NCBI RefSeq assembly: GCF_000143415.4
Contig: NW_003314432.1
Span: 104,851-168,850, forward strand
Direction of reading: 5' to 3'
DNA: 64,000 nucleotides
Source of the DNA: Selaginella moellendorffii
Lineage: Eukaryota > Plantae > Lycopodiophyta
A program made the translations under genes and the position numbers. This document shows, one piece after another, positions 22,190 to 56,696 of this stretch. The stretch's first letter is position 1, and every line of letters begins with the position of its first letter. Under the pieces are notes generated by a model, which searched no databases, was not told the origin of the DNA, and worked only from the letters and a program-made list of their open reading frames with translations.

Positions 22190-24740
22190 GCAAGGCACTA
22201 CTTTGATGATGTCCTATGACTAAGGAGGAACATGAGATGCATGTGAGGCAAATGTTGCCACTATTGAGGGAGAACAAACTGTATTCTAAACTGTCAAAGC
22301 GTGACTTCTTCTTGGAGGAGATCACATATCTTGGACATGTGGTGCCATGAGATGGTGTGCGGGAAGATCCTCAAAAGACTCAGATAGTCATTGACTAGCT
22401 TGTTCCCCCTACTGTGCATGGGTTTCCTTGGTATGGTGGGAGTCTTTTGCCGGCTTGTGAAGAACTTCTCCTTGATTGCTGCTCCTTTGATGGATATTCT
22501 GCAAAACACCACCAAGCATGCTAAGTTGGTGTGGGGTGAAAGTGTCAAGAAGTGTTTGAGCAATTAAAGCAGTCATGTATATTCTACAGATATTTGCTTG
22601 TGATAAGCCACTTGTGGTAGAAGGCTAAGGCTCACACTATGGAGTCTATGCGTTCAGAGGGTATGGCTCATGAGTCCTTTTCTCTTTCTGATCCTAGTGA
22701 GCCCATGGGTGTCAGTGTGGACCAAGGAGAGAATGTATCTACTCGTGTTCTAGCTGACACTGCTGTCACTAAGCTTTCTGAAGGAGTGAAGAAGAATTGT
22801 ATCAACTCATCTGAGCTATACAGTTGTTTGTGCAATGAGTTGTGCATAGCCAAGTGCTCAGTGTCCTCTTTGACTCTGGTGCTACGCATACTTTCATTAA
22901 CAAGGCTAGTGATGAGGGTATAGGAGCTGTCTTGGTGCAAGACTGCTGTCCTATTGCCTACATAAGCTACAAGTTTGATGCAACTTAGCTGAATTGGCAA
23001 CTCGGGATAGGAAGTTGTATGTTGTAGTTGTTGCGGTCAAAGAATGGAGGCATTATCTGTATGGTTTGAATTTTTCATGTGGATAACTTTACCACTTGTC
23101 ACTCTTTCCACTCGCCAGATGGAGCTTTGAGGCCAGCTAGCTCATTCACTGGAGTTTTTGCAGGAAATGGATGTGCAGATTCCAAATCACCAGAGGGGTT
23201 TAAGGTGACGAAAACCGATTTCCCTAGGGATTCCGGAGTAAAAGTCAAAGGGTAATTTTGACCGTGAATTCGGAAGTTGCTAGGTTTTCCAAGATCTACA
23301 ACTTTTCTTTAAGACAATTTTCCTGTTTCTAAAAGGAGTAGACAGTAAAGGTTGTTGTTTCTCCATTGTCTAGGATGGTGAACTTTATCTCATTTGGGAA
23401 GCTCTCCAGTGGTTTGCTGGATGAAATTAAGGAACTTGCTGACTTCAACTCCTTTGTAGTGAAGGCACGTGCAGTTGTTTTGAAGGGGGATGCCTCTTCC
23501 AATACAATTGTGCTTCCTTCAATGTATGAGATGGTTTCCTAGTCAAGAGGAATCGGGCTATGGTTCCTAGAGATGATGTTCTTTTACAGTGGATTCTGTA
23601 AGAGTGTCTGTTGCACCAAGTGCAGGACATCAAGGACGTGTGTTCTGGTAGAGATGCATTTATTTTGGCTTGGAATGTTGATAAGTATGTGCACAATTGT
23701 TAGACTGGCCAGGCAGTCACAATGGATTGTCAGAAGCATGAAGGTCTCTACCATAGTTAACCTCAGTGGAAGTGGGATAGCATTTTCTATGAGTTTCATA
23801 GTAGGCACTTCAAGGCAATGATGCTATTTGGGTTGTTGTGGATTGTGTGATGATGTTGGCTCACTTCTTCCTTGTGAAGATGAATGCTAAGGCTTTTGAC
23901 CTTGCTCAGCTGTATTTCTCTATGGGCTGCATGAGGATGTTGTAAGTGATCGGGATCCCACGTTCACTTTGGTGTTTTGGCAGATGGTGTTCCAGAAGCT
24001 TGAGACAAAGCTGAGCATGAGCATCCACAGTCAGATGGACAAACAAAACGAGTTAATTAGGTGCTGGAAGACATGCTGAGATCATTTGTTGGTCATTTGA
24101 AGAGGCAAGGTATTTGGGAGAAGTACCTGCCTTTGTTAAAGATTGCCCATAACTGTGCCTTCCATTTGGCTATTGAGATAGCTTTGTTTATGGCAATGTA
24201 TGGCTTTCAACCTCAGTCCCCTGTTGGTATGAACTTGGCTTCTCTTAAGGTGCGCCAGGCAAAGGAGTTGGCTGATGAGCATCATCAGCACAAGCAGTTT
24301 CAGGTTGGAGACAAGGTTTTCCTTCGGTTGTCTGAAGCTCAGTGAGCTCTTCAAGGTGGAGGTAGTTCTAAGTTGTTGCCACAGTACTGTGGGCCTTGGA
24401 TTATTCTCAAACGAGCTGGAGACCTTGCCTATCAACTAGATTTGCCTAGTGGTGTGAACATTCATCCCGTCTTCTATGTAGGAAGTTGAAGGCATGTTTG
24501 CATTCTGGTAATATCTTGGACCAGTCTGCGATCAAGATTCCAGAGATAGATGTTTGAAGGTTGGCCCTACTTGTGTGTTATAGCAACAGCTAGTGCGCAC
24601 ACATCATAAAACTTGGAGAGAGTTACTCGTTCAGTGGAATGGTTATTCTCCATATGATGCTACATGGGAAGCTGAGGATGATGTTGCTTCCTAATTTTGA
24701 GTATGACTTGGATGACATTCCAGAGGAAGAGGAGAATTAG
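22190..24740 (+). mobile_element. Degenerate chromovirus-type Ty3/gypsy pol (RT end, RNase H, integrase, chromodomain)
   Basis: LRENKLYSKLSKRDFFLEEITYLGH; ELYVVVVAVKEWRHYLYG; VSDRDP.FT..FW; HPQSDGQTKRVN*VLEDMLR; YCGPW....GDLAYQLDLP..IHPVF; LVQWNGYSPYDATWEAE. Confidence 0.85.
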
Positions 24741-26430: not shown

Positions 26431-28666
26431 GGTTAGCTCGATATTGTGTGTGAACGGATTGATGTAAGGATTCTACCATATATTCTATGATAGATATAGA
26501 TAAACTCAACAAGATTGGAATACACTAACTTTTTAATAATAATAAATAAAAATTTTTTAATGTGTATTTATGGAGCCCACAAGAGTAGGAGTGAGGTGTT
26601 ATTAAATTATGAATCCCACATTATTTATATGCTCATATGATCCTGAGGTTTAGGGATATGAGGGAGTAAGTTTTATGTAGAGGGAGGAAAAATAAGAATT
26701 AATTAGAGTGAAAATACGAGTTATTGTGAAATTAGAGTATAATGTGAGTTAAGAGTTAACACGAGCTAAGAGTAAAAACGTGATGTAGCAGCTTAAAAGA
26801 GGGAAGTAGGAATGCTCAGATGGAGTTCCACCAGGTAGAAAAGACAAGTCATACCTCAAGCCTCGGATTGCTCTCACCCGGTTGCCTACTTTAACCAAGC
26901 CCCGAACCACCCAGCAGTCTTGGCGCACAAGGATGACATCAGCCCTAACCTCTTGCTCCACTGCTCCTACTTCTGAGCTGCTAGCAGCTTCTCCCCTCCT
27001 TAAAAAAAAAGGTCTGTTGTTCTCTTGGAGTTCAAGAGGCATCCTCTTCACCGTCTCCTCTGTTTTTGCTAGCTAGTTAGCTCTTACAAGAAGGAGCACA
27101 AGCCAAGTTCAGCTCCATGCTCAGCTCTATCATCTCCTCTTTAAGACACCTCACCTCTTTGAAGCCATTCAGGAGAGCTAGCACGCTTCACGTCTAGACG
27201 TCCCCCCCTTTTTTCCTTTTTGCGATTGTCTCTTCAAACTCATCATACTTATTTAACTCACCAAACCTTACCAAGCCGAGTGCAGGTTTTGAAACCCCAT
27301 GAGTCACCTTGGCCTTTTTCCATCTTCCAGTTGAGCTCTCCAACAATCTTGACATGCGGATACGTGCAAACTGCTCCTTGAGCCAGGACCATTTCTCCAG
27401 GAGATAACTTATGCTACAACACTCTCCGCTCGACGATCTCAATGTGGAAAGATCCACAAAGCTGTCCCACTCATCATAGTTGTAGAAGAAATCATCCTCA
27501 TACTGCATCTGCAACCTTGCTCGAGCCCGAGCCTCCGCCATCGCAAGCTTCTCCCTCATCTTGATCAGCTCACACGAGGCGGCAAAACAAGTCCAGGTCC
27601 TGAGGAACAACAATGGAATACACCTTTCCCAGGTACCTGTCTCGAAACCTGTGAAAGTACAGTGGACGATGTGGTGTTTCAGATCGCAGTGGAATGATAA
27701 CTTGATGAAAGCAACAAAACCATCGAGCTCGCTCTTTGGGGATCAATTATCATCTCCTCCTTTGAAGCAATGAGCAGCAGGCCTTGATCGCATCCAGAAG
27801 TACTAGAGATAGTCTGCAAAAGCAAGTTTGACACCAGTTATTTTGGCAACACAGAAGAAAAGGAAGAAAAATAAACTCAAGTTTCAAAATTTATGGAGAT
27901 CCATACAATCCAAATCAAGATCAATCCTCCACGAACTTAATGCCGCTTTCAGCACCTCCAAGCTCTGCCGAAAAACGTAGCCACAGTATGCCACAATCGT
28001 TCGCTTGAAAATCTGAAGATGTCAATCGAAGCATGCAAGCAAAAACATGAAGTAAAGAAGTGCAGGTGGACAACAAAGGAGATGAACTGAGCGAGGCCAA
28101 GAACACATATAAGGACTGAATGTAAGCACGTGAGGCCACGTGTGGTTTTTTCCTCCGTGCGTGGCTTCATGTGCGAAGAGTTTGGTGTGGTAAGGTATGT
28201 TGCAGAGCAGCCAGAAGCCCTGGGTGAATATAAGTACGTGAGGCCTTGTGAGGTTTTACCACCGCCCGAGGACTCCTGTGCATGGGCCCCGGGCGAGAGT
28301 CATTTGTGAAAGTGTTCTGCATGAAACTGGTGCCCTGAGGCTTCTGGCCACGTGGCCCCATGATTAATTTGTGTAGAGTGTGGTTTATTTTTGCATATTG
28401 AGTGTATCGATATCTTTTAGTTAGCAGATTATATTGAAGAACTGAAGACGATATTGAACTGAAGATTCTTCAGCTCTTGAGCAACTGATTGCTGCTGGCT
28501 CACTTTCTATATATATCAAAGAGATTTTTTTTTAACAATAAACATCTAAGCTGCTGCAGTTAAGCTGTGACATTGTAAAGTTTAAAAAGGAAAAGAATTA
28601 GAAAAAGAAAAAAACAGAAATCACGAGCATTTTACTACTGCAATAACAAATCGGGATTTCTAGGGT

Positions 28667-31600
28667 ATGTGTGCGGCGCTAGGGTTTGTGTGGTGTGTGT
28701 CATTTCTCAACAATCTCATGGAGTGGAAAACGTTTTTCAGGGATCCCACTTTCTGGTGGGACAACAGGTTCAAGAAGAAAAACAAGTTCTTCTCAGAGTC
28801 CTACCCGGATTTCAAACATGTTTCTACCGGAGAGAGCCTCTGGATCGCCAACAGGAAAACACCGACCTGGGTCTCTGCAAAACTCGAGGCGCTCGCTGAC
28901 CCAGCTGTAGGTAAGGCCACCACGGCCCGCTACAAATCTCCACATACCCCACCTGTAGCTGGTGATGAACCGGTGAGTTTAGGGAGGCTGATACACCGCG
29001 TGAGAGACTCAGCTGAGAGCAGATCCCTTTCTTTGGGAAAACAAGCCCATGAAGCTGTGCTCAAGAGTGATGAGCACAAAAGCAACATCTACTTGTTGAC
29101 GGGATTGATCGATATGTACTGCAAGTGTGGCGAGCTTAAGGAGGCTCGCAAGATTTTCGACTCCATGGGAACCCGGAGTGTTGCGTCCTACAACGCGATC
29201 ATCCAGGGCTGCGGCTCGAACGGGCAAGCTGAACTTGCTCTGGAGTACTACTCTGCCCTGAGAGCTTGTACCACCATTCAACCCAACGATCGGACACATG
29301 TTGCGGTGATCAGCGCCTGCTCCAGACTTGCTACCGAATCCAGCGAGAAGAGGGAGAGAGCTCTACGCATCGGGATGGAGATCCATTCAATGCTGAGCAA
29401 GGAGAAGAAACAGCTAGATCTGTTCGTGGCGACTTGCCTGGTAGACATGTACTGCAAGTGTGGCGAGCTTGAGGAGGCTCGCAAGATTTTCCACTCCATG
29501 GGAACTCGGAGTGTTGTGTCCTACACCGCGATCATCCAGGGCTGCAACACGAACGGGCGAGCTGAACTTGCTCTGGAGTACTACTCTGCCTTGAGAGCTT
29601 GTACCACCATTCAACCCAACAATCGGACTCATGTCGCGGTGATCAGCACCTGCTCCACACTTGCTACCGAATCCAGCGAGAAGAGGGAGAGAGCTCTACG
29701 CATCGGGATGGAGATCCATTCAATGCTGAGCAAGGAGAAGAAACAGCTAGATCTGTTCGTGGCGACTTGCCTGGTAGACATGTACTGCAAGTGTGGCGAG
29801 CTTGAGGAGGCTCGCAAGATTTTCCACTCCATGGGAACTCGGAGTGTTGTGTCCTACAACGCGATCATCCAGGGCTGCGGCTCGAACGGGCAAGCTGAAC
29901 TTGCTCTGGAGTACTACTCTGCCCTGAGAGCTTGTACCACCATTCAACCCAACGATCGGACACATGTCGCGGTGATCAGCGCCTGCTCCAGACTTGCTAC
30001 CGAATCCAGCGAGAAGAGGGAGAGAGCTCTACGCATCGGGATGGAGATCCATTCAATGCTGAGCAAGGAGAAGAAACAGCTAGATCTGTTCGTGGCGACT
30101 TGCCTGGTAGACATGTACTGCAAGTGTGGCGAGCTTGAGGAGGCTCGCAAGATTTTCCACTCCATGGGAACTCGGAGTGTTGTGTCCTACAACGCGATTA
30201 TCCAGGGCTGCGGCTCGAACGGGCAAGCTGAACTTGCTCTGGAGTACTACTCTGCCCTGAGAGCTTGTACCACCATTCAACCCAACGATCGGACACATGT
30301 TGCGGTGATCAGCGCCTGCTCCAGACTTGCTACCGAATCCAGCGAGAAGAGGGAGAGAGCTCTACGCATCGGGATGGAGATCCATTCAATGCTGAGCAAG
30401 GAGAAGAAACAGCTAGATCTGTTCGTGGCGACTTGCCTGGTAGACATGTACTGCAAGTGTGGCGAGCTTGAGGAGGCTCGCAAGATTTTCCACTCCATGG
30501 GAACTCGGAGTGTTGTGTCCTACACCGCGATCATCCAGGGCTGCAACACGAACGGGCGAGCTGAACTTGCTCTGGAGTACTACTCTGCCTTGAGAGCTTG
30601 TACCACCATTCAACCCAACAATCGGACTCATGTCGCGGTGATCAGCACCTGCTCCACACTTGCTACCGAATCCAGCGAGAAGAGGGAGAGAGCTCTACGC
30701 ATCGGGATGGAGATCCATTCAATGCTGAGCAAGGAGAAGAAACAGCTAGATCTGTTCGTGGCGACTTGCCTGGTAGACATGTACTGCAAGTGTGGCGAGC
30801 TTGAGGAGGCTCGCAAGATTTTCCACTCCATGGGAACTCGGAGTGTTGTGTCCTACAACGCGATCATCCAGGGCTGCGGCTCGAACGGGCAAGCTGAACT
30901 TGCTCTGGAGTACTACTCTGCCCTGAGAGCTTGTACCACCATTCAACCCAACGATCGGACACATGTCGCGGTGATCAGCGCCTGCTCCAGACTTGCTACC
31001 GAATCCAGCGAGAAGAGGGAGAGAGCTCTACGCATCGGGATGGAGATCCATTCAATGCTGAGCAAGGAGAAGAAACAGCTAGATCTGTTCGTGGCGACTT
31101 GCCTGGTAGACATGTACTGCAAGTGTGGCGAGCTTGAGGAGGCTCGCAAGATTTTCCACTCCATGGGAACTCGGAGTGTTGTGTCCTACAACGCGATTAT
31201 CCAGGGCTGCGGCTCGAACGGGCAAGCTGAACTTGCTCTTGAGTACTACTCTGCCCTGAGAGCTGATAACACCATTCAACCCGACGATTGGACACATGTC
31301 ACGGTGATCAGCGCCTGCTCCACACTTGCTACCGAATCCAGCGGGAAGAGGGAGAGAGCTCTACGCATCGGGATGGAGATCCATTCAATGCTGAGCAAGG
31401 AGAAGAAACAGCTAGATCTGTTCGTGGCGAATTGCCTGGTAGACATGTACTGCAAGTGTGGCGAGCTTGAGGAGGCTTGCAAGATTTTCCACTCCATGGG
31501 AACTCGGAGTGTTGTGTCCTACACCGCGATCATCCAGGGCTGCAACACGAACGGGCGAGCTGAGCTTGCTCTGGAGTACTACTCTGCCCTGAGAGCTGAT

Positions 31601-33088
31601 AACACCATTCAACCCGACGATCGGATTCATGTCGTGGCGATCAGCGCCTGCTCCACACTTGCTACCGAATCCAGTGAGAAGAGGGAGAGAGCTCTACGCA
31701 TTGGGATGGAGATCCATTCAATGCTGAGCAAGGAGAAGAAACAGCTAGATCTGTTCGTGGCGAATTGCCTGGTAGACATGTACTGCAAGTGTGGCGAGCT
31801 TGAGGAGGCTCGCAAGATTTTCCACTCCATGGGAACTCGGAGTGTTGTGTCCTACACCGCGATCATCCAGGGCTGCAACACGAACGGGCGAGCTGAACTT
31901 GCTCTGGAGTACTACTCTGCCCTGAGAGCTGATAACACCATTCAAGCTGATGCTTGCACCTACACCTGCGTCCTTGTTGCTTGCGGGAGTGTGATGGCGA
32001 TCAAGCTCGGGAGGGAGATTCACCAGCTGGCGAAGCATAAAGGGCTGCTGAAAAACAATCCAGTTCTGGGCTCCAGCCTGGTGAGCTTCTACGGCAAATG
32101 CGGCGATGTTGATTCTGCTCAGGAAGCGTTTGACGAGTGCCGAGCTCGGGACGACACGGGTCTCTGGAACTCGCTCATACAGGCTTACACTCTCCAGGGC
32201 CGATCGATCGAGGCCTTGGAGCGTTTCTATTCCATGACTCAGGAGGAGGGCTGTAAAGCTGACGATGTGAGTTTTGTCTCGGTGTTGAACGCTTGCAGCC
32301 ATGGTGGTCTGGTCGGGAAAGGAAGGCAGCTTCTGGATGAAATGCCCAAGCAGTATGGAGTCAAGCCACGTCTGGAGCATTATGTGTGCCTGATCGATAT
32401 GCTCGGGCGAGCTAACCTCCTCGACGAAGCTGTGAGAGTTCTCAGAGCCATGCCTTTTGAACCGGATGCAGTGGTTTGGACGTCCCTGCTCGGAGCCTGC
32501 CGGAAGTGGAAGAATTACACGATCGGCAAACTCGCGTTTGAGCGTCTTGTGGAGATGGATCCCAAGAGCGACACGCCCTACGCATTGATGGCCAATATAT
32601 TTGGAAACCTGGGGATGCTCAGTGAAAGGGCTACTGTTGTGGAGAGAATGAGAGGTGAAGGCAGCTTCAGGGAGCCCGGGAGAAGCTGGTGGACGGATGT
32701 TAGCTCAGGAAAAGTGCATTCTTTTTCTGTCGGGGATAGGAGTCACTCACAGAGCGACGAGATTGCGGCGAAGCTCAAGCAATTGTTGCTGAGAATGAAA
32801 GAGGAGGGGTACGCGAGTGATGTGATCAACGTTCTAAAAGACATACCCGAGGAAGAGAAAGAGGATCACCTGTGCGGCCACAGTGAGAAGCTTGCGCTGG
32901 GGTGTGCTCTGGTGAACTCGCACCAGAAGGAGACCATCAGAATTGTGAAAAATCTCCGAGTTTGTGACGATTGCCATGCGGCCACTGCTCTCATCTCTAA
33001 GCTGGAAAAAAGGCTAATCATCTGCAAAGATGCCAGTCGGGTTCATGTGTTCCAGGATGGCAGATGTTCCTGTGACAACTACTTTTGA
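28667..33088 (+). CDS. PLS-class PPR-E-DYW putative organellar C-to-U RNA editing factor (DYW of PGxSWWTD type) with N-terminal OSB-like PDF motif, 1473 aa
   Basis: Intact intronless ORF (alternative ATG at 28718). WWDNR..K..PDFKH..TGESLW at 28724-28894; S-P-L array 29087-31951; P2-L2-S2, E1/E2; DYW from PGRSWWTD (32675) with HSEKLA, CDDCH and HVF..G.CSC; ends NYF. Confidence 0.93.
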   Translation: MCAALGFVWCVSFLNNLMEWKTFFRDPTFWWDNRFKKKNKFFSESYPDFKHVSTGESLWIANRKTPTWVSAKLEALADPAVGKATTARYKSPHTPPVAGDEPVSLGRLIHRVRDSAESRSLSLGKQAHEAVLKSDEHKSNIYLLTGLIDMYCKCGELKEARKIFDSMGTRSVASYNAIIQGCGSNGQAELALEYYSALRACTTIQPNDRTHVAVISACSRLATESSEKRERALRIGMEIHSMLSKEKKQLDLFVATCLVDMYCKCGELEEARKIFHSMGTRSVVSYTAIIQGCNTNGRAELALEYYSALRACTTIQPNNRTHVAVISTCSTLATESSEKRERALRIGMEIHSMLSKEKKQLDLFVATCLVDMYCKCGELEEARKIFHSMGTRSVVSYNAIIQGCGSNGQAELALEYYSALRACTTIQPNDRTHVAVISACSRLATESSEKRERALRIGMEIHSMLSKEKKQLDLFVATCLVDMYCKCGELEEARKIFHSMGTRSVVSYNAIIQGCGSNGQAELALEYYSALRACTTIQPNDRTHVAVISACSRLATESSEKRERALRIGMEIHSMLSKEKKQLDLFVATCLVDMYCKCGELEEARKIFHSMGTRSVVSYTAIIQGCNTNGRAELALEYYSALRACTTIQPNNRTHVAVISTCSTLATESSEKRERALRIGMEIHSMLSKEKKQLDLFVATCLVDMYCKCGELEEARKIFHSMGTRSVVSYNAIIQGCGSNGQAELALEYYSALRACTTIQPNDRTHVAVISACSRLATESSEKRERALRIGMEIHSMLSKEKKQLDLFVATCLVDMYCKCGELEEARKIFHSMGTRSVVSYNAIIQGCGSNGQAELALEYYSALRADNTIQPDDWTHVTVISACSTLATESSGKRERALRIGMEIHSMLSKEKKQLDLFVANCLVDMYCKCGELEEACKIFHSMGTRSVVSYTAIIQGCNTNGRAELALEYYSALRADNTIQPDDRIHVVAISACSTLATESSEKRERALRIGMEIHSMLSKEKKQLDLFVANCLVDMYCKCGELEEARKIFHSMGTRSVVSYTAIIQGCNTNGRAELALEYYSALRADNTIQADACTYTCVLVACGSVMAIKLGREIHQLAKHKGLLKNNPVLGSSLVSFYGKCGDVDSAQEAFDECRARDDTGLWNSLIQAYTLQGRSIEALERFYSMTQEEGCKADDVSFVSVLNACSHGGLVGKGRQLLDEMPKQYGVKPRLEHYVCLIDMLGRANLLDEAVRVLRAMPFEPDAVVWTSLLGACRKWKNYTIGKLAFERLVEMDPKSDTPYALMANIFGNLGMLSERATVVERMRGEGSFREPGRSWWTDVSSGKVHSFSVGDRSHSQSDEIAAKLKQLLLRMKEEGYASDVINVLKDIPEEEKEDHLCGHSEKLALGCALVNSHQKETIRIVKNLRVCDDCHAATALISKLEKRLIICKDASRVHVFQDGRCSCDNYF
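29087..31951 (+). repeat. Coding tandem array of 333-bp (111-aa) S-P-L PPR triplets: 8 full units plus a ninth S-P
   Basis: DMYCKCG occurs 9 times at exact 333-bp spacing (unit starts 29087, 29420 ... 31751), with near-identical DNA. Confidence 0.97.
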
Positions 33089-35087
33089 AAACATGTCAGT
33101 GCTCTTTCTTGCAGTTATCCCTGGTTTTAAACCCTCCGTGAGTCAAGCAGAAACATGGGCCGCTGAGTGAGCATGCCTTGTCAAAGTACTGCTGTCAACC
33201 TGAACTTCACGGAGAAAAAATTAACATTTAAAAGTTAAAACTATGCAAAAGGAGTCTTAAATTTAAATTTCTTTTTGGTAGCAGAATCGGGGAATGCTGA
33301 CTAAACCTGCCAACAGGTGCCCCAAAACGGAGTGCCCTAGTATGAAGACTTGCCAGTACCCAACTTTGGGTTTGTGCTCCTAGAGCACGTTGAAGACGTG
33401 TGGAAGCTGGTGACGACAGCATTTGTTTCTTGTGACGTACTCAACAGTTCCTTGGCGACGTCTTCCTTCCAGATTTTTTGAGCTTGTCGTGAGTGGTGAC
33501 CTGCTTGCTCTCTCTGTGACAACTTCTTCCAGCCTCTGGTGCCCAACCTCAAGGCTCTCTTGTGGATGGAGCTAGCCCTACACAGTGTGTGTGTGTATCA
33601 ACCAGCAGACACACAAATCATTGAGAATTAGCAACAAGTGTGTATCATAGGCTTAGTACGTAGTGTACTAGTGTTCATGTACATGTGTTTCAGTTAAATA
33701 TAATGGGCCAAATACACCGAAGAAGTGTGTATAAGAAGAGTAGAAACAAATTAAGAAATTTAAATTAAGAAGTGAAAATGAAAATAAAAATTGTCCATCC
33801 TCATCAGTTTGCTGAAATTAAGTTGGATTCAATTCTTCCAGCTCCAAATATTGTGTGATTGAGTTGTAAGTTAATAGTAGAAAATAAGAAAAAAAACAAA
33901 CATTGAAAAAATAGTGTTTGATAATATCTTCTTTGCTTTTAGTTTTTTATTTTCAAAAGAAAGTTAGTGGGGGAGTAAGATATCTTTGCCGTTCATTGGT
34001 GGTTAATTAAATGAGCATGTTTAGAGATGTTTATAAGAGTTTAGCTCTGGACCAAGAGTACCCGAAAATTAAAGTTCAAAATTTACGTTTTCCCTATTTG
34101 CACAATAACTTAAGCTAAAGTAATGTACTTACCCTTATTTTTTATGGGGATTCGCAAGAAAAAAAAAGGCAAATTTAGAGGATTCTTAAGTAATTTTCAA
34201 AAACCCCGACCAAATCGGTCATCATCCTTCTATATTTAAAAGAGCAAGGGTGACATATTCAATCGAAATTCTTTACGAGCTTAATGGTGGAGATGAAGAC
34301 ATGTGGGAAAAAACAGTTGAGGGTGGAACGTTTTTCTTTTAGGGTAAACCAGCTTTTTTAATGCATTTTTCCAGGAGCGCTTATGTATTTATGTTATGGC
34401 TGTTCATATATGAGGGTTTCATGTTTGACTCTCTCTCGTATCACTGTGCAGCATTGGGAACAAAACAAAGAGAGTGAGCTCCTTGATTCTTCCAAGTTTC
34501 GTTCTCACATTTTTCACAGTTGAATCGCCACTGTTTCTGAGTCTCCAGAATGTATACTTTGGAACGGGTATGTGTATGATTTATGGTCTTTGCAATGTCG
34601 TTTGAATGTGTTTGCATAAGAACAGGTCATGAGTACTGGGAAGATGAAGGCATTGAAGAAAAAAAGCCAGCATGCAGGCAAATGATGAACATATTTCACC
34701 CATATGATCCTCTCACCTATAGGTATCAATATACTTCTGTGTGACCAGTGTTTACATTTATCCTTTCATCCTGATTACAGAGTGGAACCTCTAATATCTA
34801 TTCTTTTTGGAGAAAGTCAATGAATATCTTGGGATACAGGTAATCATAGTTCTTTGTAAGTTTTGTTGTCAAAGCTAGAGGAAATTCTTTGGTTGGGGTA
34901 TGGTTTTGTCACAGTTTTTTATGGTAGTATGGTGACAGAAAGGCTATCTAGAAGTCCTAATGGTAGAGTCGACTTAATGCTACAGGTAAGTCTTGCTCTT
35001 TGCTATCACGTCATTCTCATGTGGATCCAGGATACAAAATTTGAGCACCACTACATATTGGTATCTGATAAATGACAGTAGTGGCTG

Positions 35088-37445: not shown

Positions 37446-39992
37446 TTTTATTTTAAGGGAAGTTGTTAAAAATTATTCCGGAAATATTCGAGAAGATTCT
37501 TAAGTTAGGGTTTGGCGTGCCTGCGAAGAAGATCTGATCTCGCGGCCCGGCCCGAGAATTAAAACATGGCAGCAGCCGCGGAGATTTATGAGGAGAACCT
37601 GAGGAGGTGGAGGAAGCAGGTTTAGGGTTGGAAGAGGAGGAAGTCGCCATAAACAGCAACAGGAGGAAGAGGTGCCCATGGAGGGAGGTGGCCATGGAGT
37701 GGTAGGAGGGAGCGGGGTGGCCGGGGTTGGCCGCGGATCTCTGAATCTGGCCCCGGGAGGATTAGGCCATGGTTCTGAGGCGGCTCGAGGAGGGGGTGCC
37801 CCGGGAGGAGGAGGCCATGGTTCTACCCTAGGCGGTTCTTCTTCGGGAGGAGGAGGCCATGTATCATCGCCAGGAGGAGGCCAAGCCTCGGTGGGAGGAG
37901 CCGAAGCCACAGCGGGAGGAGTCCAAGCCGCACCCGGAGGAGCCCAAGCCACGTCTGGAGGAGTTCCCCTGGAGCACAGCGTGCCGGGAGTTCCAACTGC
38001 TTTGAGAACCAGAGATGGCAGTGAGTTTACATTTCTTAGGTTGCATGCATGCATGAGTGATTGAGAGCTCCCGGCAGGGTCATGAAGAAGAGGGAGATGA
38101 CAGCGTCCCCGATCTGGAACAAGACCCGGATGGATGCTCACATGGAGGAGCTCGACCACGAGGCTGTCCAGTTTGTGGATACCTCGGGTTTTGCTGCACC
38201 TGCTGCTGCGAAGAGAACCCGGGGAAAGAACTGGAACCATGCTGAGACCATGCTCCTGATTGATCTCGCTCGGGGAAAAACATCTCGCGAAGATTGCGGG
38301 GGAGGGAGGAGCAGCCAGCATGTTCTCATGACGAAGACACAGCGCTGGAATCTCATCTTTCACCCTTTTGCTTTAGGGTTTAAATGCACATTGCGGATGA
38401 CAAGAGCCCCGCTGCCAGAGGAAGAAGACCGTGAACTTGAGGTTCGTCGGGCTGTGATTGGGAGGAGGTTTTGCATCGGCCTGTGGTGGGTGAAGCCTCG
38501 AAATGTCGCCACCTAGAGTAAGTTTTCTTTGGAGTATTACGATGTGGGGGGAAACTTCAGATGGAGAAGAGGACCTTCTTCACCATTTGTGGCATGCTGG
38601 AGAGCGAGATCCGGAAGCAAGATACCGGTTGGAGGAGTGTGGTGCCGGTGGATGTTCGACTGGGGGTGACTTTGTACAAGTTTTTCAAGAACACAGATTA
38701 CTTGGATCTGGCGGACAAGTTCGGCATCGGGGAGTCCACAGCTCATGAAATTGTCATGGACACTACTGTGGCGATTGTCAAGTGTCTCAGGTACAAGATT
38801 CATTTTCCTTCAACCGCCAAGGAGGTTCGAGCTGTTACTGCTGGCTTTCGACAAGTGACAGGTACATTTTCTTATGTTTTTTGGATTGTTATAAGTTTTG
38901 ATGACCAATAGGAACCTGACTGCCTAATGTTGCTGGGGCGATCGACTACTAGACTGGACGGCGAGAGCTACTACGACCGGAGGCAGCGGTACTCAGTCAT
39001 CTTGCGTTTGTGATGCCCAGAAGAGGTTCCTCAGTATCTACGCTGGGTGGCCAGGTATGTTTCTTTGTGTGTTGTGGATGGTTCTAAAATGTTCTTTTTG
39101 CTTTCAGGACGCGTCCACGACATGAGGGTTTTTCGTAATTCAACCCTCGGGAACAAGATTGTAGCAAGGGAGCTGCTGACATCGCTCACGGTGTTAGTAT
39201 ATGGTGATAGGATCAAGCCATACCTAGTGGGGGACAAAGGGTACCAACTCCAGCAGCATCTGATGATTCCACACACAAGTAAGTCTTCTTCATTCTACTT
39301 TCTTTTGTTCACTTGTTTTGGTTGTTGCTCAGCTCCGAACCCGACACCATCCAAGGCAGCTTTCAACCTTCATCACCACCTTGCTCGGATTGTTATTGAG
39401 CAAGCATTTGGACTTCTTAAAATGAAGTTCAGATGCTTGGATCAAAAACAAAGGATCCAGCCAAAGTACTTTCCTAACATCATCAAGAGTTGTTGCATCT
39501 TGCACAATTTCTTGATTGATGTTGGGGAGACTGATCTTCGGGCGGAGATCCAAGCTTGGAGGAAAGAGGTGAAAAGGCTCAAGGACCAGGACCTCTTTGT
39601 TGATTACAGTGATCCCGAGCAAGCGGAAGGGGAACCTTGTGAGGAGTTGCACAGTCCAGAGGATGCAAAAGAGGTTAGAGAGAACCTCACGTTTTCCCTC
39701 TGTCTTTGCCAGTGGCGTTCGTGTTTGCTTTGAAATTTGCCAGGATATAATTCTAAACATTTGAATTTGAATTTGAAATTTCAAAATTTGAATTAAGTGA
39801 ATTTTAAGTGTTCGAGTGCATTGTTTTTAAGTGCGAATCCGAGGGTGTTTTTCCACTTAAATCTAAGACATGTGCGAATGCAAAAGTCCTTATAAGTTTA
39901 CTTTGCAACACAAATTTTTTCAATGTACTTTCTTAATTTTTAAAGTGGGTCGCTTAAGTTTTTTTTCACTAAATAAATGTGCGAATTGGTCC
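37446..39992 (+). mobile_element. PIF/Harbinger transposon, copy 2 (defective; its 5' subterminal part probably lies at about 34092-34221, split off by the Helitron)
   Basis: Gly-rich plus Myb/SANT-like ORF1 remnant (about 37566-38330) and transposase (about 38400-39733) with YLVGDKGY, IEQAFGLLK and CCILHNF; frameshifts present. Confidence 0.88.
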
Positions 39993-50169: not shown

Positions 50170-50550
50170 AAAAAGGGCAACTGCATTTGAGGTGAAAGGG
50201 CTACTAATTGCCGGAAAGCAGAAAGAGGCTTTACGGGCTGCTCAAGACGGGCAACTTTGGGTATGTGCTCTTCTTATGGCCCGGCAGCTGGGAGAGAAGG
50301 TACCTTGTCTTGTAGCTTTGATGTATAGACCGTTAGTGATTGGTCTTGTGGTTTTTAATAGTTCTACACCGACACTATAGCGGAGATGGCTCAAAGTCAG
50401 TTTCAACCAGGGTTTCCCCTCCGGACTCTAACTCTTCTTTATGCTGGTCAACATGCCGGAGTGTTCATAGGGAACACTAATTCGTCGAACGTAACAGCGC
50501 TTCAACCTCAACCGGTTCCAGCGTCTCTGGAGACATTGAGATGAGGTATA
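50170..50550 (+). pseudogene. SEC16: SEC16 fragment (paralog of 14385-14915)
   Basis: ATAFEVKGLLIAGKQKEALRAAQDGQLWVCALLMARQLGEK; GFPLRTLTLLYAGQHAGVF; truncated at the Harbinger junction. Confidence 0.75.
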
Positions 50551-52963
50551 AGTGGAAAAACACCCTCGGATTCGCACTTAAAAACAATGCATTCAAACAC
50601 TTAAAATTCACTTAATTCAAATTTTGAAATTTCAAATTCAAATTCAAATGTTTAGAATTATATCCCGGCAAATTTCAAAGCAAACACGAACGCCACTGGC
50701 AAAGACAGAGGGAAAACGTGAGGTTCTCTCTAACCTCTTTTGCATCCTCTGGACTGTGCAACTCCTCACGAGGCTCCCCTTCCGCTTGCTCGGGATCACC
50801 GTAATCGACAAAGAGGTCCTGGTCCTTGAGCCTTTTCACCTCTTTCCTCCAAGCTTGGATCTCCACCCGAAGATCAGTCTCCCCAACATCAATCAAGAAA
50901 TTGTGCAAGATGCAACAACTCTTGATGATGTTGGGAAGGTACTTTGGCTGGATCCTTTGTTTTTGATCCAAGCATCTGAACTTCATTTTAAGAAGTCCAA
51001 ATGCTTGCTCAATAACAATCCAAGCAAGGTGGTGATGAAGGTTGAAAGCTGCCTTGGATGGTGTCGGGTTCAGAGCTGAGCAACAACCAAAACAAGTGAA
51101 CAAAAGAAAGTAGAATGAAGAAGACTTACTTGTGTGTGGAATCATCAGATGCTGCTGGAGTTGGTACCCTTTGTCCCCCACTAGGTATGGCTTGATCCTA
51201 TCATCATATGCTAACACTGCGGGCAACGTCAGCAGCTCCCTTGCTACAATCGTGTTTCTGAGGGTTGAATTACGAAAAACCCTCATGTCATGGATGCATC
51301 CTGAAAGCAAAATGAACATTTTAGAACCATCCTGGCCACCCAGCGTAGACACTGAGGAACCTCTTCTGGGCATCACAAACCCCTTGCAAGATGACCGAGT
51401 ACCACTGCTTCCGGTCATAGTAGCTCTCGCCGTCCAGTCTAGTAGTCGATCGCCCCAGCAACATTAGGCAGTCGGGTTCCTATTGCTCATCAAAACTTAT
51501 AACAATCCAAAAAACATAAGAAAATGTTCGTGAGATGTGGACTCCCCGATGCCGAACTTGTCCACCAGATCCAAGTAATCTGTGTTCTTGAAAAGCTTGT
51601 ACAAAGTCACCCCCAGTCGAACATCCACTGGCACCACACTCCACCAACCGGTATCTTGCTTCCAGATCTCACTCTCCAGCATGCCACAAATGGTGAAGAA
51701 GGTCCTCTTCTCCATCTGAAGTTTCCTCTTCCACCTCCCCACATCGTAATACTCCAAAGAAAACTTACTCCAGGTGGTGACATTTCGAGGCTTCACCCAC
51801 CACAGGCCGATGCAAAACCTCCTCCCAATCACGGCCCGACGAACCTCAAGTTCACGGTCTTCTTCCTGAGGCAGCATCCGCAATGTGCATTTAAACCCTA
51901 AAGCAAAAGGGTGAAAGATGAGATTCCAGCGCTGTCGTCATGAGAACATGCTGGCTGCTCCTCCCTCCCCCGCAATCTTCGCGAGATGTTTTTCCCGAAC
52001 GAGATCAATCAGGACCATGGTCTCAGCATGGTTCGAGTTCTTTCCCCGGGTTCTCTTCGCAGCAGCAGGTGCAGCAAAACCCGAGGTATCCACAAACTGG
52101 ACAGCCTCGTGGTCGAGCTCCTCCACGTGAGCATCCGGGTCTTGTTCCAGATCGGGGACGCTGTCATCTCCCTCTTCTTCATGACCCTGCCGGGAGCTCT
52201 CAATCACTCATGCATGCATGCAACCTAAGAAATGTAAAACTCACCGCCATCTCTGGTTCTCAAAGCAGTTGGAGCTCCTGGCACGCTGTGCTCCAGGGGA
52301 ACTCCTCGAGACGTGGCTTCCTCCTGGCGATGATCCATGGCCTCCTCCCGGAGAAGAACCGCGGCGTCCTCCTCCTAGAGTAGAACCATGGCCTCCTCCT
52401 CCCGGGGCACCCCCTCCTCGAGCCGCCTCAGAACCATGGCCTAATCCTCCCGGGGCCAGATTCAGAGATCCGCGGCCAACCCCGGCCACCCCGCGCCCTC
52501 CTCCCACTCCATGGCCACCTCTCCCTCCATGGGCACCTCTTCCTCCTCCTGTTGGTGAAGATAGAGCACGAGCAGGCCCAGATCCAGCTCGATCGGCCCC
52601 ATTTCCCAGAGCTCTGTTTCCTCTTCCAACCCTAAAATCGGATTACCTGCTTCCTCCACCTCCTCAGGCCTCTCCTCATAAATCTCCGCGGCTGCTGCCA
52701 TGTTTTAATTCTCGGGCCGTGCCGCGAGATCAGATCTTCTTTACAGGCACGCCAAAGCCTTACCTAAGAATCTTCTCGAATATTTCCGGAATAATTTTTA
52801 ACAACTTCCCTTAAAATAAAATGACCCCAACACTTTAGATTTGGTCGGGGGTTTTGAAAATTACTTAAGAATCCTCTAAATTCGCCTCTTTTTTTTTGAA
52901 ATACTAATAATTTTCCCATAAAAAATAAGGGTAAGTACATTACTTTAGATTGTGCAAATAGGG
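50549..52963 (-). mobile_element. PIF/Harbinger transposon, copy 3 (defective, 3' end truncated)
   Basis: ORFs 50675-51418, 51497-51883 and 51938-52207 are near-identical to copy 1 on the opposite strand; internal deletion at about 51525. The 5' end is tentative. Confidence 0.85.
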
Positions 52964-53981
52964 AAAACGTAAATTTAAACTTTAATTTTCGGGTAACTCT
53001 TGGTCCAGAGCTAAACTCTTATAAACATCTCTAAACATGCTCATTTAATTAACCACCAATGAACGGCAAAGATATCTTTACCAGCACTCCCCCACTAATT
53101 TTCTTTCAAAATAAAAAACTAAAAGCAAAGAAGATATTATCAAACACTATTTTTTCAATGTTTGTTTTTTTTTTCTTATTTTCTACTATTAATTAAGTTA
53201 CAACTCAATCACACAATATTTGGAGCTGGAAGAATTGAATCCAACTTAATTTCAGCAAACTGATGAGGATGGACAATTTTTATTTTCATTTCTTTTGCAC
53301 TTCTTAATTTACATTTCTTAATTTGTTTCTACTCTTCTTATACACACTTCTTCGGTGTATTTGGCCCATTATATTTAGCTGAAACACATGTACATGAACA
53401 CTAGTACACTACGCACTGAGCCTATGATACACACTTGTGATTTGTGCATCTGCTGGTTGATACACACACACACACACGTGTAGGGCTAGCTCCATCCACA
53501 AGAGAGCCTTGAGGTTGGGCACCAGAGGCTGGAAGAAGTCGTCACAGGAGAGAGCAAGCAGGTCACCACTCACGACAAGCTCAAAAAATCTGGAAGGAAG
53601 ACGTCGCCAAGGAACTGGTGAGTACGTCGCAAGAAACAAATGCTGTCGTCACCAGCTTCCACACGTCTTCAACGTGCTCTAGGAGCACAAACCCAAAGTT
53701 GGGTACTGGCAAGTCTTCATACTAAGGCTTATTATCTGAATCTGGGCACTCCGTTTTGGGGCACCTGTTGGCAGGTTTAGTCAGCATTCCCCGATTCTGC
53801 TACCAAAAAGAAATTTACATTTAAGACTCCTTTTGCATAGTTTTAACTTTTAAATGTTAATTTTTTCTCCGTGAAGTTCAGGTTGACGGCGGTACTTTGA
53901 CGAGGCATGCTCACTCAGCGGCCCATGTTTCTGCTTGACTCACGGAGGGTTTAAAACCAGGGAAAGAGCACTGACATGTTT

Positions 53982-56696
53982 TCAAAAGTAGTTGTCACAG
54001 GAACATCTGCCATCCTGGAACACATGAACCCGACTGGCATCTTTGCAGATGACTAGCCTTTTTTCCAGCTTAGAGATGAGAGCAGTGGCCGCATGGCAAT
54101 CGTCACAAACTCGGAGATTTTTCACAATTCTGATGGTCTCCTTCTGCTGCGAGTTCACCAGAGCACACCCCAGCGCAAGCTTCTCACTGTGGCCGCACAG
54201 GTGATCCTCTTTCTCTTCCTCGGGTATGTCTTTTAGAACGCTGATCACATCACTCGCGTACCCCTCCTCTTTCATTCTCAGCAACAATTGCTTGAGCTTC
54301 GCCGCAATCTCGTCGCTCTGTGAGTGACTCCTATCCCCGACAGAAAAAGAATGCACTTTTCCTGAGCTAACATCCGTCCACCAGCTTCTCCCGGGCTCCC
54401 TGAAGCTGCCTTCACCTCTCATTCTCTCCACAACAGCAGCCCTTTCACTGAGCATCCCCAGGTTTCCAAATATATTGGCCATCAATGCATAGGGCGTGCC
54501 GCTCTTGGGATCCATCTCCACAAGACGCTCAAACGCGAGTTTGCCGACCGTGTAATTCTTCCACTTCCGGCAGGCTCCGAGCAGGGACGTCCAAACCACT
54601 GCATCCGGTTCAAAAGGCATGGCTCTGAGAACTCTCACAGCTTCGTCAAGGAGGTTAGCTCGCCCGAGCATATCGATCAGGCACACATAATGCTCCAGAC
54701 GTGGCTTGACTCCATACTGCTTGGGCATTTCATCCAGAAGCTGCCTTCCTTTCCCCACCAGACCACCATGGCTGCAAGCGTTCAACACCGAGACAAAACT
54801 CACATCGTCAGCTTTACAGCCCTCCTCCTGAGTCATGGAATAGAAACGCTCCAAGGCCTCGATCGATCGGCCCTGAAGAGTGTAAGCCTGTATGAGCGAG
54901 TTCCAAAGACCCGTGTCGTCCCGAGCTCGACACTCGTCAAACGCTTCCTGAGCAGAATCAACATCGCCGCATTTGCCGTAGAAGCTCACCAGGCTGGAGC
55001 CCAGAACTGGATTGTTTTTCAGCAGCCCTTTATGCTTCGCCAGCTGGTGAATCTCCCTCCCGAGCTTGATCGCCATCACACTCCCGCAAGCAACAAGGAC
55101 GCAGGTGTAGGTGCAAGCATCAGCTTGAATGGTGTTATCAGCTCTCAGGGCAGAGTAGTACTCCAGAGCAAGTTCAGCTCGCCCGTTCGTGTTGCAGCCC
55201 TGGATGATCGCGGTGTAGGACACAACACTCCGAGTTCCCATGGAGTGGAAAATCTTGCGAGCCTCCTCAAGCTCGCCACACTTGCAGTACATGTCTACCA
55301 GGCAAGTCGCCATGTACACACCTAGGTGTTTCTTCTCCTTGCTCAGTACTGAATGGAGTTCCATCCCGATGCGTAGAGCTCTCTCCCTCTTGTCCCTGGA
55401 TTCGGTAGCAAGTCTGGAGCAGGCGCTGATCACCGCGACATGAGTCCGATCGTTGGGTTGAATGGTGGTACAAGCTCTCAGGGCAGAGTAGTACTCCAGA
55501 GCAAGTTCAGCTCGCCCGTTCGTGTTGCACCCCTGGATGATCGCGGTGTAGGACACAACACTCCGAGTTCCCATGGAGTGGAAAATCTTGCGAGCCTCCT
55601 CAAGCTCGCCACAGTTGCAGTACATGTCTACCAGGCAAGTCGCCATGTACAGACCTAGACGTTTCTTCTCCTTGCTCAGTACTGAATGGACTTCCATCCC
55701 GATGCGTAGAGCTCTCTCCCTCTTCTCGCTGGATTCGGTAGCAAGTGTGGAGCAGGCGCTGATCACCGCGACATGTGTCCGATCATCGGGTTGAATAGTG
55801 TTATCAGCTCTCAGGGCAGAGTAGTACTCCAGAGCAAGTTCAGCTTGCCCGTTCGTGTTGCACCCCTGGATGATCGCGGTGTAGGACACAACACTCCGAG
55901 TTCCCATGGAGTGGAAAATCTTGCGAGCCTCCTCAAGCTCGCCACACTTGCAGTACATGTCTACCAGGCAAGTCGCCACGAACAGATCTAGCTGTTTCTT
56001 CTCCTTGCTCAGCATTGAATGGATCTCCATCCCGATGCGTAGAGCTCTCTCCCTCTTCTCGCTGGATTCGGTAGCAAGTCTGGAGCAGGCGCTGATCACC
56101 GCGACATGTGTCCAATCGTTGGGTTGAATGGTGGTACAAGCTCTCAGGGCAGAGTAGTACTCCAGAGCAAGTTCAGCTTGCCCGTTCGAGCCGCAGCCCT
56201 GGATGATCGCGTTGTAGGACACAACACTCCGGGTTCCCATGGAGTCGAAAATCTTGCGAGCCTTCTCAAGCTCGCCACACTTGCAGTACATATCGATCAA
56301 TCCCGTCAACAAGTAGATGTTGCTTTTGTGCTCATCACTCTTGAGCACAGCTTCATGGGCTTGTTTTCCCAAAGAAAGGGATCTGCTCTCAGCTGAGTCT
56401 CTCACGCGGTGTATCAGCCTCCCTAAACTCACCGGGTCATCACCAGCTACAGGTGGGGTATGTGGAGATTTGTAGCTGGCCGCCTTACCTACAGCTGGGT
56501 CAGCGAGCGACTCGAGTTTTGCAGAGACCCAGGTTGGTGTTTTCCTGTTGGCGATCCACAGGCTCTCTCCAGTAGAAACATGTTTGAAATCCGGGTAGGA
56601 CTCTGAGAAGAACTTGTTTTTCTTCTTGAACCTGCTGTCCCACCAGAAAGTGGGATCCCTGAACTCCATGAGATTGTTGAGAAATGACACACACAT
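53982..56696 (-). CDS. PLS-class PPR-E-DYW putative RNA editing factor with N-terminal PDF motif, paralog 2 (904-aa ORF; likely ATG at 56669)
   Basis: Intact ORF: WWDSR...PDFKH..TGESLW; 4 DMYC(K/N)CG units; E domains; PGRSWWTD (54395), HSEKLA, CDDCH, CSCDNYF. Confidence 0.92.
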   Translation of the reverse strand: MCVSFLNNLMEFRDPTFWWDSRFKKKNKFFSESYPDFKHVSTGESLWIANRKTPTWVSAKLESLADPAVGKAASYKSPHTPPVAGDDPVSLGRLIHRVRDSAESRSLSLGKQAHEAVLKSDEHKSNIYLLTGLIDMYCKCGELEKARKIFDSMGTRSVVSYNAIIQGCGSNGQAELALEYYSALRACTTIQPNDWTHVAVISACSRLATESSEKRERALRIGMEIHSMLSKEKKQLDLFVATCLVDMYCKCGELEEARKIFHSMGTRSVVSYTAIIQGCNTNGQAELALEYYSALRADNTIQPDDRTHVAVISACSTLATESSEKRERALRIGMEVHSVLSKEKKRLGLYMATCLVDMYCNCGELEEARKIFHSMGTRSVVSYTAIIQGCNTNGRAELALEYYSALRACTTIQPNDRTHVAVISACSRLATESRDKRERALRIGMELHSVLSKEKKHLGVYMATCLVDMYCKCGELEEARKIFHSMGTRSVVSYTAIIQGCNTNGRAELALEYYSALRADNTIQADACTYTCVLVACGSVMAIKLGREIHQLAKHKGLLKNNPVLGSSLVSFYGKCGDVDSAQEAFDECRARDDTGLWNSLIQAYTLQGRSIEALERFYSMTQEEGCKADDVSFVSVLNACSHGGLVGKGRQLLDEMPKQYGVKPRLEHYVCLIDMLGRANLLDEAVRVLRAMPFEPDAVVWTSLLGACRKWKNYTVGKLAFERLVEMDPKSGTPYALMANIFGNLGMLSERAAVVERMRGEGSFREPGRSWWTDVSSGKVHSFSVGDRSHSQSDEIAAKLKQLLLRMKEEGYASDVISVLKDIPEEEKEDHLCGHSEKLALGCALVNSQQKETIRIVKNLRVCDDCHAATALISKLEKRLVICKDASRVHVFQDGRCSCDNYF
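55119..56318 (-). repeat. Coding tandem array of 333-bp PPR triplets: 3 full units plus a fourth S-P
   Basis: 333-bp periodicity; same unit as 29087-31951. Confidence 0.95.

Follow-up and report, generated by a model that had tools for sequence, protein, structure and literature searches.

An OSB-type PDF motif at the N-terminus of a PLS-class PPR-DYW protein of Selaginella moellendorffii and of its relatives in seed-free plants

Can a motif known from OSB proteins (organellar binders of single-stranded DNA) form part of a protein of the RNA-editing type, and if so, how far does such a combination extend? The question is raised by a gene, here called gene 1, that lies at positions 28667-33088 on the forward strand of a 64,000-nucleotide stretch of the lycophyte Selaginella moellendorffii (RefSeq assembly GCF_000143415.4, contig NW_003314432.1, positions 104,851 to 168,850; this whole stretch is called the window below). 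Plant organelles edit their RNA with PLS-DYW proteins, on which designer RNA base editors build as well. The initial annotation of the locus, made from the sequence alone, had read in gene 1 an OSB-type PDF motif in frame with a PLS array, E domains and a DYW domain retaining HSE and CxxC, and had named it the best candidate for an undescribed system in the window. The architecture was borne out, by a single reading frame, Pfam domains and inspection of the motifs; the fusion is not special to the locus. We hold it to be nearly certain that gene 1 encodes a PLS-E-DYW factor of the organellar C-to-U editing type with an additional N-terminal OSB-type PDF and, jointly with this, that it is a member of a larger family.

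The N-terminal motif and the reading frame of gene 1

The PDF motif occupies amino acids (aa) 20-73 (W20 to L73; 28724-28885, forward strand) and follows the pattern W..FF..P..WWDNR..K..PDFKH..GE.LW...P.WV. A phmmer search with aa 1-100 against 1.84 billion representative proteins yielded 484 matches at E ≤ 1e-3 (126 at E ≤ 1e-10), all of which run through query aa ~19-76, and most of the matched proteins hold the module 2-13 times. Among the matches listed, i.e. the best 150 of the 484, were P0048 (Populus 'protein OSB1, mitochondrial-like', E 2.6e-18), P0079 (Euphorbia 'organellar single-stranded DNA binding protein 3') and the Chara protein P0142, in which a clear Pfam SSB domain is followed by the PDF motif. 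A profile was built from 376 motif segments, taken solely from matches without PPR repeats, and recognised gene 1 over aa 8-81 with 75.4 bits (E 1.3e-19, at a nominal Z of 1e6), so that the comparison of the motif with PDF motifs proposed in the initial annotation gave a significant match. The profile was seeded by matches to the gene 1 query itself and is thus partly dependent on it, a gap that is closed by the named OSB members and by the match in fold described next. Gene 1 keeps the invariant Trp of an alignment of 101 PDF sequences as well as every one of its 12 near-invariant columns (P, W, D, R, K, P-D-F, L-W, P, W).

The AlphaFold2 model of the motif, made with the same 101-sequence alignment, had a mean confidence score (pLDDT) of 80.9 and is made up of short strands and two helices, one of them C-terminal. 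When it was compared by Foldseek with the Swiss-Prot AlphaFold models, i.e. with predicted models on both sides, only four matches reached a probability of 1.00, the next best being 0.04, and these were the Arabidopsis proteins OSB2 (307-371), OSB1 (184-240), OSB3 (369-426) and OSB4 (294-357), to whose PDF regions the gene 1 motif is 34-41% identical. A structure search of the AFDB cluster library also recovered plant proteins named OSB. Profile and predicted fold together firmly identify the N-terminal string as a genuine OSB-type PDF motif, as had been claimed; a chance resemblance is ruled out by the E-values and the fold. Querying the ESM Atlas with the first 100 aa gave only phage gp49-like clusters, whose scores of at most 0.81 were treated as chance. 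No domain was found by a Pfam scan of the first 118 aa, even at E ≤ 1, and a word-indexed search of aa 1-100 within the context of the 1473-aa protein gave no match, the sensitivity of this tool being limited. Searches for a solved structure (a PDB sequence profile, Foldseek against the PDB and a wide VIA search) likewise returned no match for the motif (E > 5, Z ≤ 2.7), so that the fold offered no clue to a mechanism.

The range of the PDF motif is thereby wider than the OSB proteins, and it is a motif without a solved structure or a detectable structural relative. Tandem PDF-like proteins with 6-13 motifs were also seen: P0010 from the dinoflagellate Cladocopium sp. (534 aa), P0003 from Kingdonia (1160 aa) and two ENA/JGI proteins, P0012 and P0005 (719 and 908 aa). 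Their occurrence in, among others, a dinoflagellate symbiont implies that the motif is not limited to green plants or to OSB proteins.

The remainder of gene 1 is read without a stop or frameshift between the modules, as a single uninterrupted open reading frame of 1473 codons without introns. There are two candidate starts: M1 at 28667, where the frame opens immediately 3' of an in-frame TAG (28661-28663), and M18 at 28718, the second in-frame ATG, which had been taken as the start in the initial annotation. With the PDF beginning at residue 20, no transit peptide is visible. The motif is followed by a Pro/Ala/Gly-rich linker (aa ~75-100; 28889-28966) that is predicted to be disordered: in an AlphaFold2 model of residues 10-299, for which 66 fusion proteins were aligned, the linker had a pLDDT below 50 (aa 75-100, model residues 66-91) and the PPR helices, from about aa 105 onwards, one above 90. 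The PDF is accordingly modelled as a separate module, with a flexible tether of about 27 residues between it and the PPR solenoid.

The PLS-class PPR array (28967-32512) comprises 20-21 stretches recognised by the Pfam models PPR, PPR_1, PPR_2 and PPR_3. Much of it is a tandem array, which Tandem Repeats Finder reports as 8.5 copies of a 333-bp unit (29114-31945; 96% matches, 0 indels) and which corresponds to nine nearly identical triplets of 111 aa, readable as S-P-L. The triplets vary chiefly at a few positions (SYN/SYT, QPND/QPNN/QPDD and ACTT/ADNT). The array is followed by the E and E+ motifs (aa 1283-1377; 32513-32797), of which Pfam places the E motif at aa 1283-1341 (E_motif, 5e-10) and the E+ motif at aa 1350-1377 (Eplus, 1.1e-5); they include the PG box, PGRSWW, at aa 1337 (32675-32692). 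The DYW deaminase domain (32807-33085; aa 1381-1472, Pfam DYW_deaminase, E 3.3e-31) carries HSEKLA at aa 1405 (32879-32896) and CDDCH at aa 1433 (32963-32977), and all catalytic residues are kept, with both HxE and CxxC intact. The C-terminus reads CSCDNYF, in which NYF replaces the Asp-Tyr-Trp tripeptide; this is a conservative variant and concerns no catalytic residue. No SSB or OB domain was found in the protein with Pfam, and since an OB-fold domain is absent, the protein is not an OSB.

The family of PDF-PPR proteins in seed-free plants

The initial annotation had suspected that similar fusions might occur in other seed-free plants, and this proved correct. Five of the 150 listed phmmer matches also match the PPR part of gene 1; one is P0001, a Selaginella gene model discussed below, and in the four others scanned the PPR repeats were confirmed by Pfam. 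The members so recovered are a second Selaginella family (P0093/P0152, 910 aa, with a PDF at residues 4-78 and an E-type end), P0129 from the lycophyte Diphasiastrum complanatum (PDF and PPR), P0092 from the fern Adiantum capillus-veneris (two PDFs and PPR) and P0022, a single open reading frame of 1371 aa with three PDFs on a Logan contig of 4755 nt that is taken to be a transcript. A second search, with the PDF of P0129 as query and with candidates limited to 607-1930 aa, gave 72 proteins, 72 of which carry PPR Pfam domains: 68 further distinct Diphasiastrum proteins, besides P0129 as the sixty-ninth, and 3 Sphagnum proteins. The co-occurrence of PDF and PPR, which had been proposed for a survey across land plants, was thus recorded in at least 75 fusion proteins from Diphasiastrum, Sphagnum, Adiantum, Selaginella and one transcript contig, within the scope of the matches listed and the P0129-PDF search. 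An artefactual fusion of gene models is ruled out by the continuous reading frame in the window together with the single frame of the P0022 contig.

A scan with the PDF profile showed 1-3 PDFs per fusion protein, placed N-terminal to the PPR array in 74 of the 75; the one protein that departs from this, P0195, has the look of two gene models joined into one. The ending GDYW occurs in at least 19 of the proteins. Ahead of the first PDF, the Sphagnum proteins, P0022 and many Diphasiastrum members carry a further 30-140 residues that resemble a presequence; the Selaginella fusions (gene 1, P0093 and the third copy of gene 1 described below) begin with the PDF itself and show no presequence. Gene 1 is one member of a PLS PPR subfamily with 1-3 N-terminal PDFs that is old, unannotated and widespread in seed-free land plants. 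Dozens of natural editors, from lycophytes, ferns and mosses, contain this accessory module of the single-strand-binding type. The fusion has apparently escaped notice, probably for want of a Pfam model of the PDF motif.

The origin of the fusion was approached with a tree of 101 PDF motifs (82 columns). The gene 1 motif pairs with that of P0093 (SH-aLRT 96), and 15 of the 18 PPR-linked motifs fall into one loose group, along with charophyte OSB motifs, while the OSB of Diphasiastrum itself (P0133) sits with OSB1 of seed plants. When all PPR-linked motifs were constrained to one clade, the tree was 27 log-likelihood units better than that of a quick free search (AU p 0.89). These data, which at 82 columns cannot amount to proof, are compatible with a single ancient fusion. 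A recent capture of the PDF from the lycophyte's own OSB is disfavoured, as P0133 groups elsewhere and a single PPR-linked clade is not rejected.

Paralog, transcripts and gene models

The window contains a second copy of the gene, inverted, at 53982-56696 (reverse strand; intact frame, 904 aa), for which the same architecture had been claimed. Its layout does match, over their last 440 aa the two proteins are 98.6% identical and the catalytic residues of the DYW domain are preserved; it has only 4 triplet units versus the 9 of gene 1, however, and its PDF motif (56496-56663) is damaged. WKTF, and with it the one Trp that is invariant in the family, has been lost through a 12-nt deletion, and the match to the PDF profile (60.6 bits) begins only at profile position 32. 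Relative to gene 1, the paralog also contains an extra segment of 111 nt (56664-56774), made up of an insert and a 29-nt duplication of the start region, that shifts its ancestral ATG (56833) out of frame. A six-frame scan of the window revealed no PDF motif beyond these two. Gene 1 and the paralog lie within a large inverted duplication (27928-33337 and 53744-57731). More inverted pairs are found between them (39076-39864 with 50544-51332, and 38550-38749 with 51527-51726), and the stretch of about 30 kb looks like a single long, imperfect palindrome with its centre near 45 kb. Upstream of gene 1, a short open reading frame at 24061-24345 (forward strand) is similar to the C-terminal portion of a retrotransposon integrase and is probably a transposon remnant.

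The public annotation of S. moellendorffii includes two RefSeq models, P0001 and P0002, that match the N-terminus at 97-98% identity in another word-indexed search. In P0001 (497 aa) the repeated triplets are removed by splicing, and in P0002 the PDF motif is read in another frame over its first half; through these errors the public annotation under-represents this gene.

In 14 sequencing runs labelled as RNA, from at least 9 studies, a fraction of 0.43-0.45 of the sampled words of 28300-29110 was present, and in six runs of unspecified type a fraction of 0.65-0.84. Contigs from four of the RNA-labelled runs were aligned to 27300-29150. In each of the four a single contig spans 28693 to ~29103-29143 without gaps or joints; in the RNA-library assemblies, therefore, the PDF coding region passes unbroken into the linker and the first PPR motifs. 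No contig from these runs covers 27982-28692, the 0.7 kb directly 5' of gene 1, and the sole match further upstream was one low-depth contig in one run (27803-27960); within ~1.4 kb 5' of gene 1 the contigs of the four runs showed no upstream exon or splice joint. The contigs deviate from gene 1 at 4 positions, among them 28840 (C/G), 28864 (G/A) and 28889 (G/T), and they run upstream into an insert of the paralog type, their end before 28693 matching 56724-56695, yet they keep the WKTF codons. The mismatches, the paralog-type insert and the retained WKTF together imply that they derive from a third, near-identical copy. As to the fusion transcript, which had been named as a check, the RNA-library contigs cross the junction from PDF to PPR without a gap, though in the third copy and not in gene 1. 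In that copy an upstream TAG closes the frame and the first Met gives MCVSFLNNLMEW..., which leaves no room for a transit peptide. All RNA contigs start inside the paralog-type insert, and the insert may have supplied the transcription start.

These observations bear on the possibility that gene 1 and its paralog are young, unconstrained duplicates that arose by recent unequal crossing-over and inverted segmental duplication and may be non-functional as editors, the architecture of the family being real all the same. The triplet units, 96% identical and without indels, and the difference in unit number (9 versus 4) fit such a history, and the triplet array looks as if it expands and contracts via unequal crossing-over; the loss of the invariant Trp and the 111-nt insert in the paralog, the position of both genes within the inverted duplication and the derivation of the examined RNA contigs from the third copy point in the same direction. 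Both frames are nevertheless intact (1473 and 904 aa) with their catalytic residues preserved, and a near-identical copy is present in RNA-labelled libraries of several studies. We consider this explanation unlikely, though worth keeping in view for the two copies in the window.

Possible roles of the PDF and comparison with known systems

According to reviews, the PDF motif of OSB1 is by itself sufficient for binding of single-stranded DNA (PMC6963530; PMC4166229), OSB1 and OSB2 favour single-stranded DNA over double-stranded DNA or RNA (PMC4166229) and OSB2 has been reported as a tetramer (PMC6963530). The PDF probably keeps an ability to bind single-stranded nucleic acid in the context of the fusion; that the relevant ligand would be RNA rather than DNA can be put forward only with hesitation. 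PPR arrays bind RNA in parallel orientation, with the N-terminus toward the 5' end. Because the N-terminus of the array faces the 5' end of the RNA, the PDF would be positioned just upstream of the sequence-specific footprint, where it could serve as a sequence-independent, aromatic-rich auxiliary binder of single-stranded nucleic acid that adds affinity or avidity and keeps the substrate unfolded, and the DYW domain would deaminate the target C while the PDF holds the substrate open. The reading to which we incline, on balance, is that the PDF is such an auxiliary single-strand binder in a PLS-DYW editing factor.

Several points weigh against this reading. The preference of OSB1 and OSB2 for single-stranded DNA over RNA (PMC4166229) makes an RNA ligand an assumption, and binding by PPR-linked PDFs is itself a predicted function, carried over from the OSB proteins. 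In Diphasiastrum, the mean pairwise identity of the PDF (76%) is no better than that of the array (73%; DYW domain 85%) and gives no signal of a separate constraint, relative conservation being uninformative on this matter because the Diphasiastrum family is a young expansion. Neither gene 1 nor P0093 has a visible transit peptide, so that an organellar location is putative. The RNA contigs stem from the third copy and hence provide no expression evidence specific to gene 1, and nine near-identical triplets are odd for a site-specific editor and may be the sign of a duplicate that is young or does not function.

The PDF could instead tether the editor to the nucleoid by binding organellar single-stranded DNA in transcription bubbles, R-loops or replication intermediates, with editing occurring co-transcriptionally and RNA still being the substrate of the deaminase. 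Binding of single-stranded DNA, in preference to RNA, is the sole activity reported for the PDF (PMC6963530; PMC4166229), the residues conserved in the PDFs of OSB proteins are all kept in gene 1, the flexible linker would suit a tether, and the presequence-like N-termini of the Sphagnum proteins, many Diphasiastrum members and P0022 fit an organellar location. Against this stand the Selaginella copies without a visible presequence, and contact with RNA explains the constant placement of the PDF on the 5' side equally well; we regard a tether of this kind as a minority possibility. The stronger statement, that the PDF-PPR-DYW proteins are the first editors physically coupled to single-stranded DNA, whether through obligatorily co-transcriptional editing or through presequence-less Selaginella copies that act on single-stranded DNA or in the nucleus or cytosol, is doubtful in our judgement. 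The missing presequence in the Selaginella copies may leave room for a non-canonical location.

The same N-terminal position would also suit a role of the PDF in protein-protein contact, oligomerisation or import, for instance by recruiting OSB or other nucleoid proteins or by standing in for a presequence: the Selaginella PDF occupies the exact position of a transit peptide, and the tetramer reported for OSB2 (PMC6963530) shows the kind of assembly envisaged. Its acidic residues and five Trp set the motif apart from organellar presequences, the Sphagnum and Diphasiastrum members carry a presequence-like extension besides the PDF, and there is no structural relative of the fold that would hint at protein binding; such a role therefore appears improbable to us.

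More distant still is a deaminase directed at single-stranded DNA or acting outside the organelles, in which the PDF would deliver the DYW domain to single-stranded DNA, or the protein would find its substrate, RNA or DNA of viral or transposon origin, in the cytosol or nucleus, by analogy with APOBEC3. A single-stranded DNA-binding module and a cytidine deaminase on one chain, the lack of a visible presequence in the Selaginella copies and the fast turnover of the repeat array would be in line with such an activity. The E/DYW region, however, is of the ordinary organellar editing type, and relatives in Sphagnum and Diphasiastrum as well as P0022 have presequence-like N-termini. We know of no DYW domain for which deamination of DNA has been shown; deamination of DNA by proteins of the gene 1 type is unsupported and we rate the whole proposal as very improbable.

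If the PDF is functional in these proteins, it could explain how editors reach sufficient affinity in lineages without MORF helpers, and it would offer a direct handle on whether editing and transcription are coupled at nucleoids as well as a small natural add-on to try out for the improvement of synthetic PPR editors.

The architecture is genuine, occurs widely in seed-free plants and seems not to have been described in print. It departs from the canonical PLS-DYW layout by the extra N-terminal PDF, as had been noted initially, and a full-text literature search, with most subscription papers outside its coverage, retrieved no description of a PDF-PPR-DYW fusion. A 2026 survey of OSB evolution demanded the presence of both the OB and the PDF domain and names neither PPR nor Selaginella (PMC13393729), and in a kingdom-wide survey of editing-factor fusions of the same year no OSB or single-strand binding module is named (PMC13386178).

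With the OSB proteins, the fusions share the PDF motif of about 55 aa with its conserved W, P, WWDNR, K, PDFK(H), LW and P.WV, its predicted fold and its occurrence in 1 to 3 copies. In the OSB proteins, however, the PDF is C-terminal to an OB fold, whereas in gene 1 it lies at the N-terminal end, ahead of the PPR, E and DYW modules, with no OB-fold or SSB-like domain, and the PPR-linked PDFs group apart from the Diphasiastrum OSB P0133. With the canonical PLS-E-DYW editors, such as Physcomitrium PPR56 and PPR65, which carry out editing in E. coli (PMC6397227), and whose DYW domain type is known from structures (PMC7611903), gene 1 shares the P-L-S triplets, E/E+, a DYW domain with PG box, HxE and CxxC, and the lack of introns; it differs from them in the extra PDF, the absence of a recognisable transit peptide, the nine near-identical triplets and the terminal NYF.

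The principle of a sequence-reading PPR array joined on one chain to a second nucleic-acid-related module is shared with the RRM-PPR fusions (catalogued in PMC13386178), with PPR-SMR and with PRORP, from all of which gene 1 differs in that its added module is a PDF motif, for which there is no Pfam model. The last comparison is with the MORF/RIP proteins of seed plants, a functional analogy that we infer from the possible role of the PDF as a non-specific helper strengthening the RNA binding of PLS arrays. PPR-SMR and PRORP are themselves PPR arrays joined to other nucleic-acid-binding or catalytic modules, and MORFs are, to our knowledge, absent from early-diverging land plants. MORFs act in trans and have another fold, whereas the PDF, with no homology implied, would provide its help in cis.

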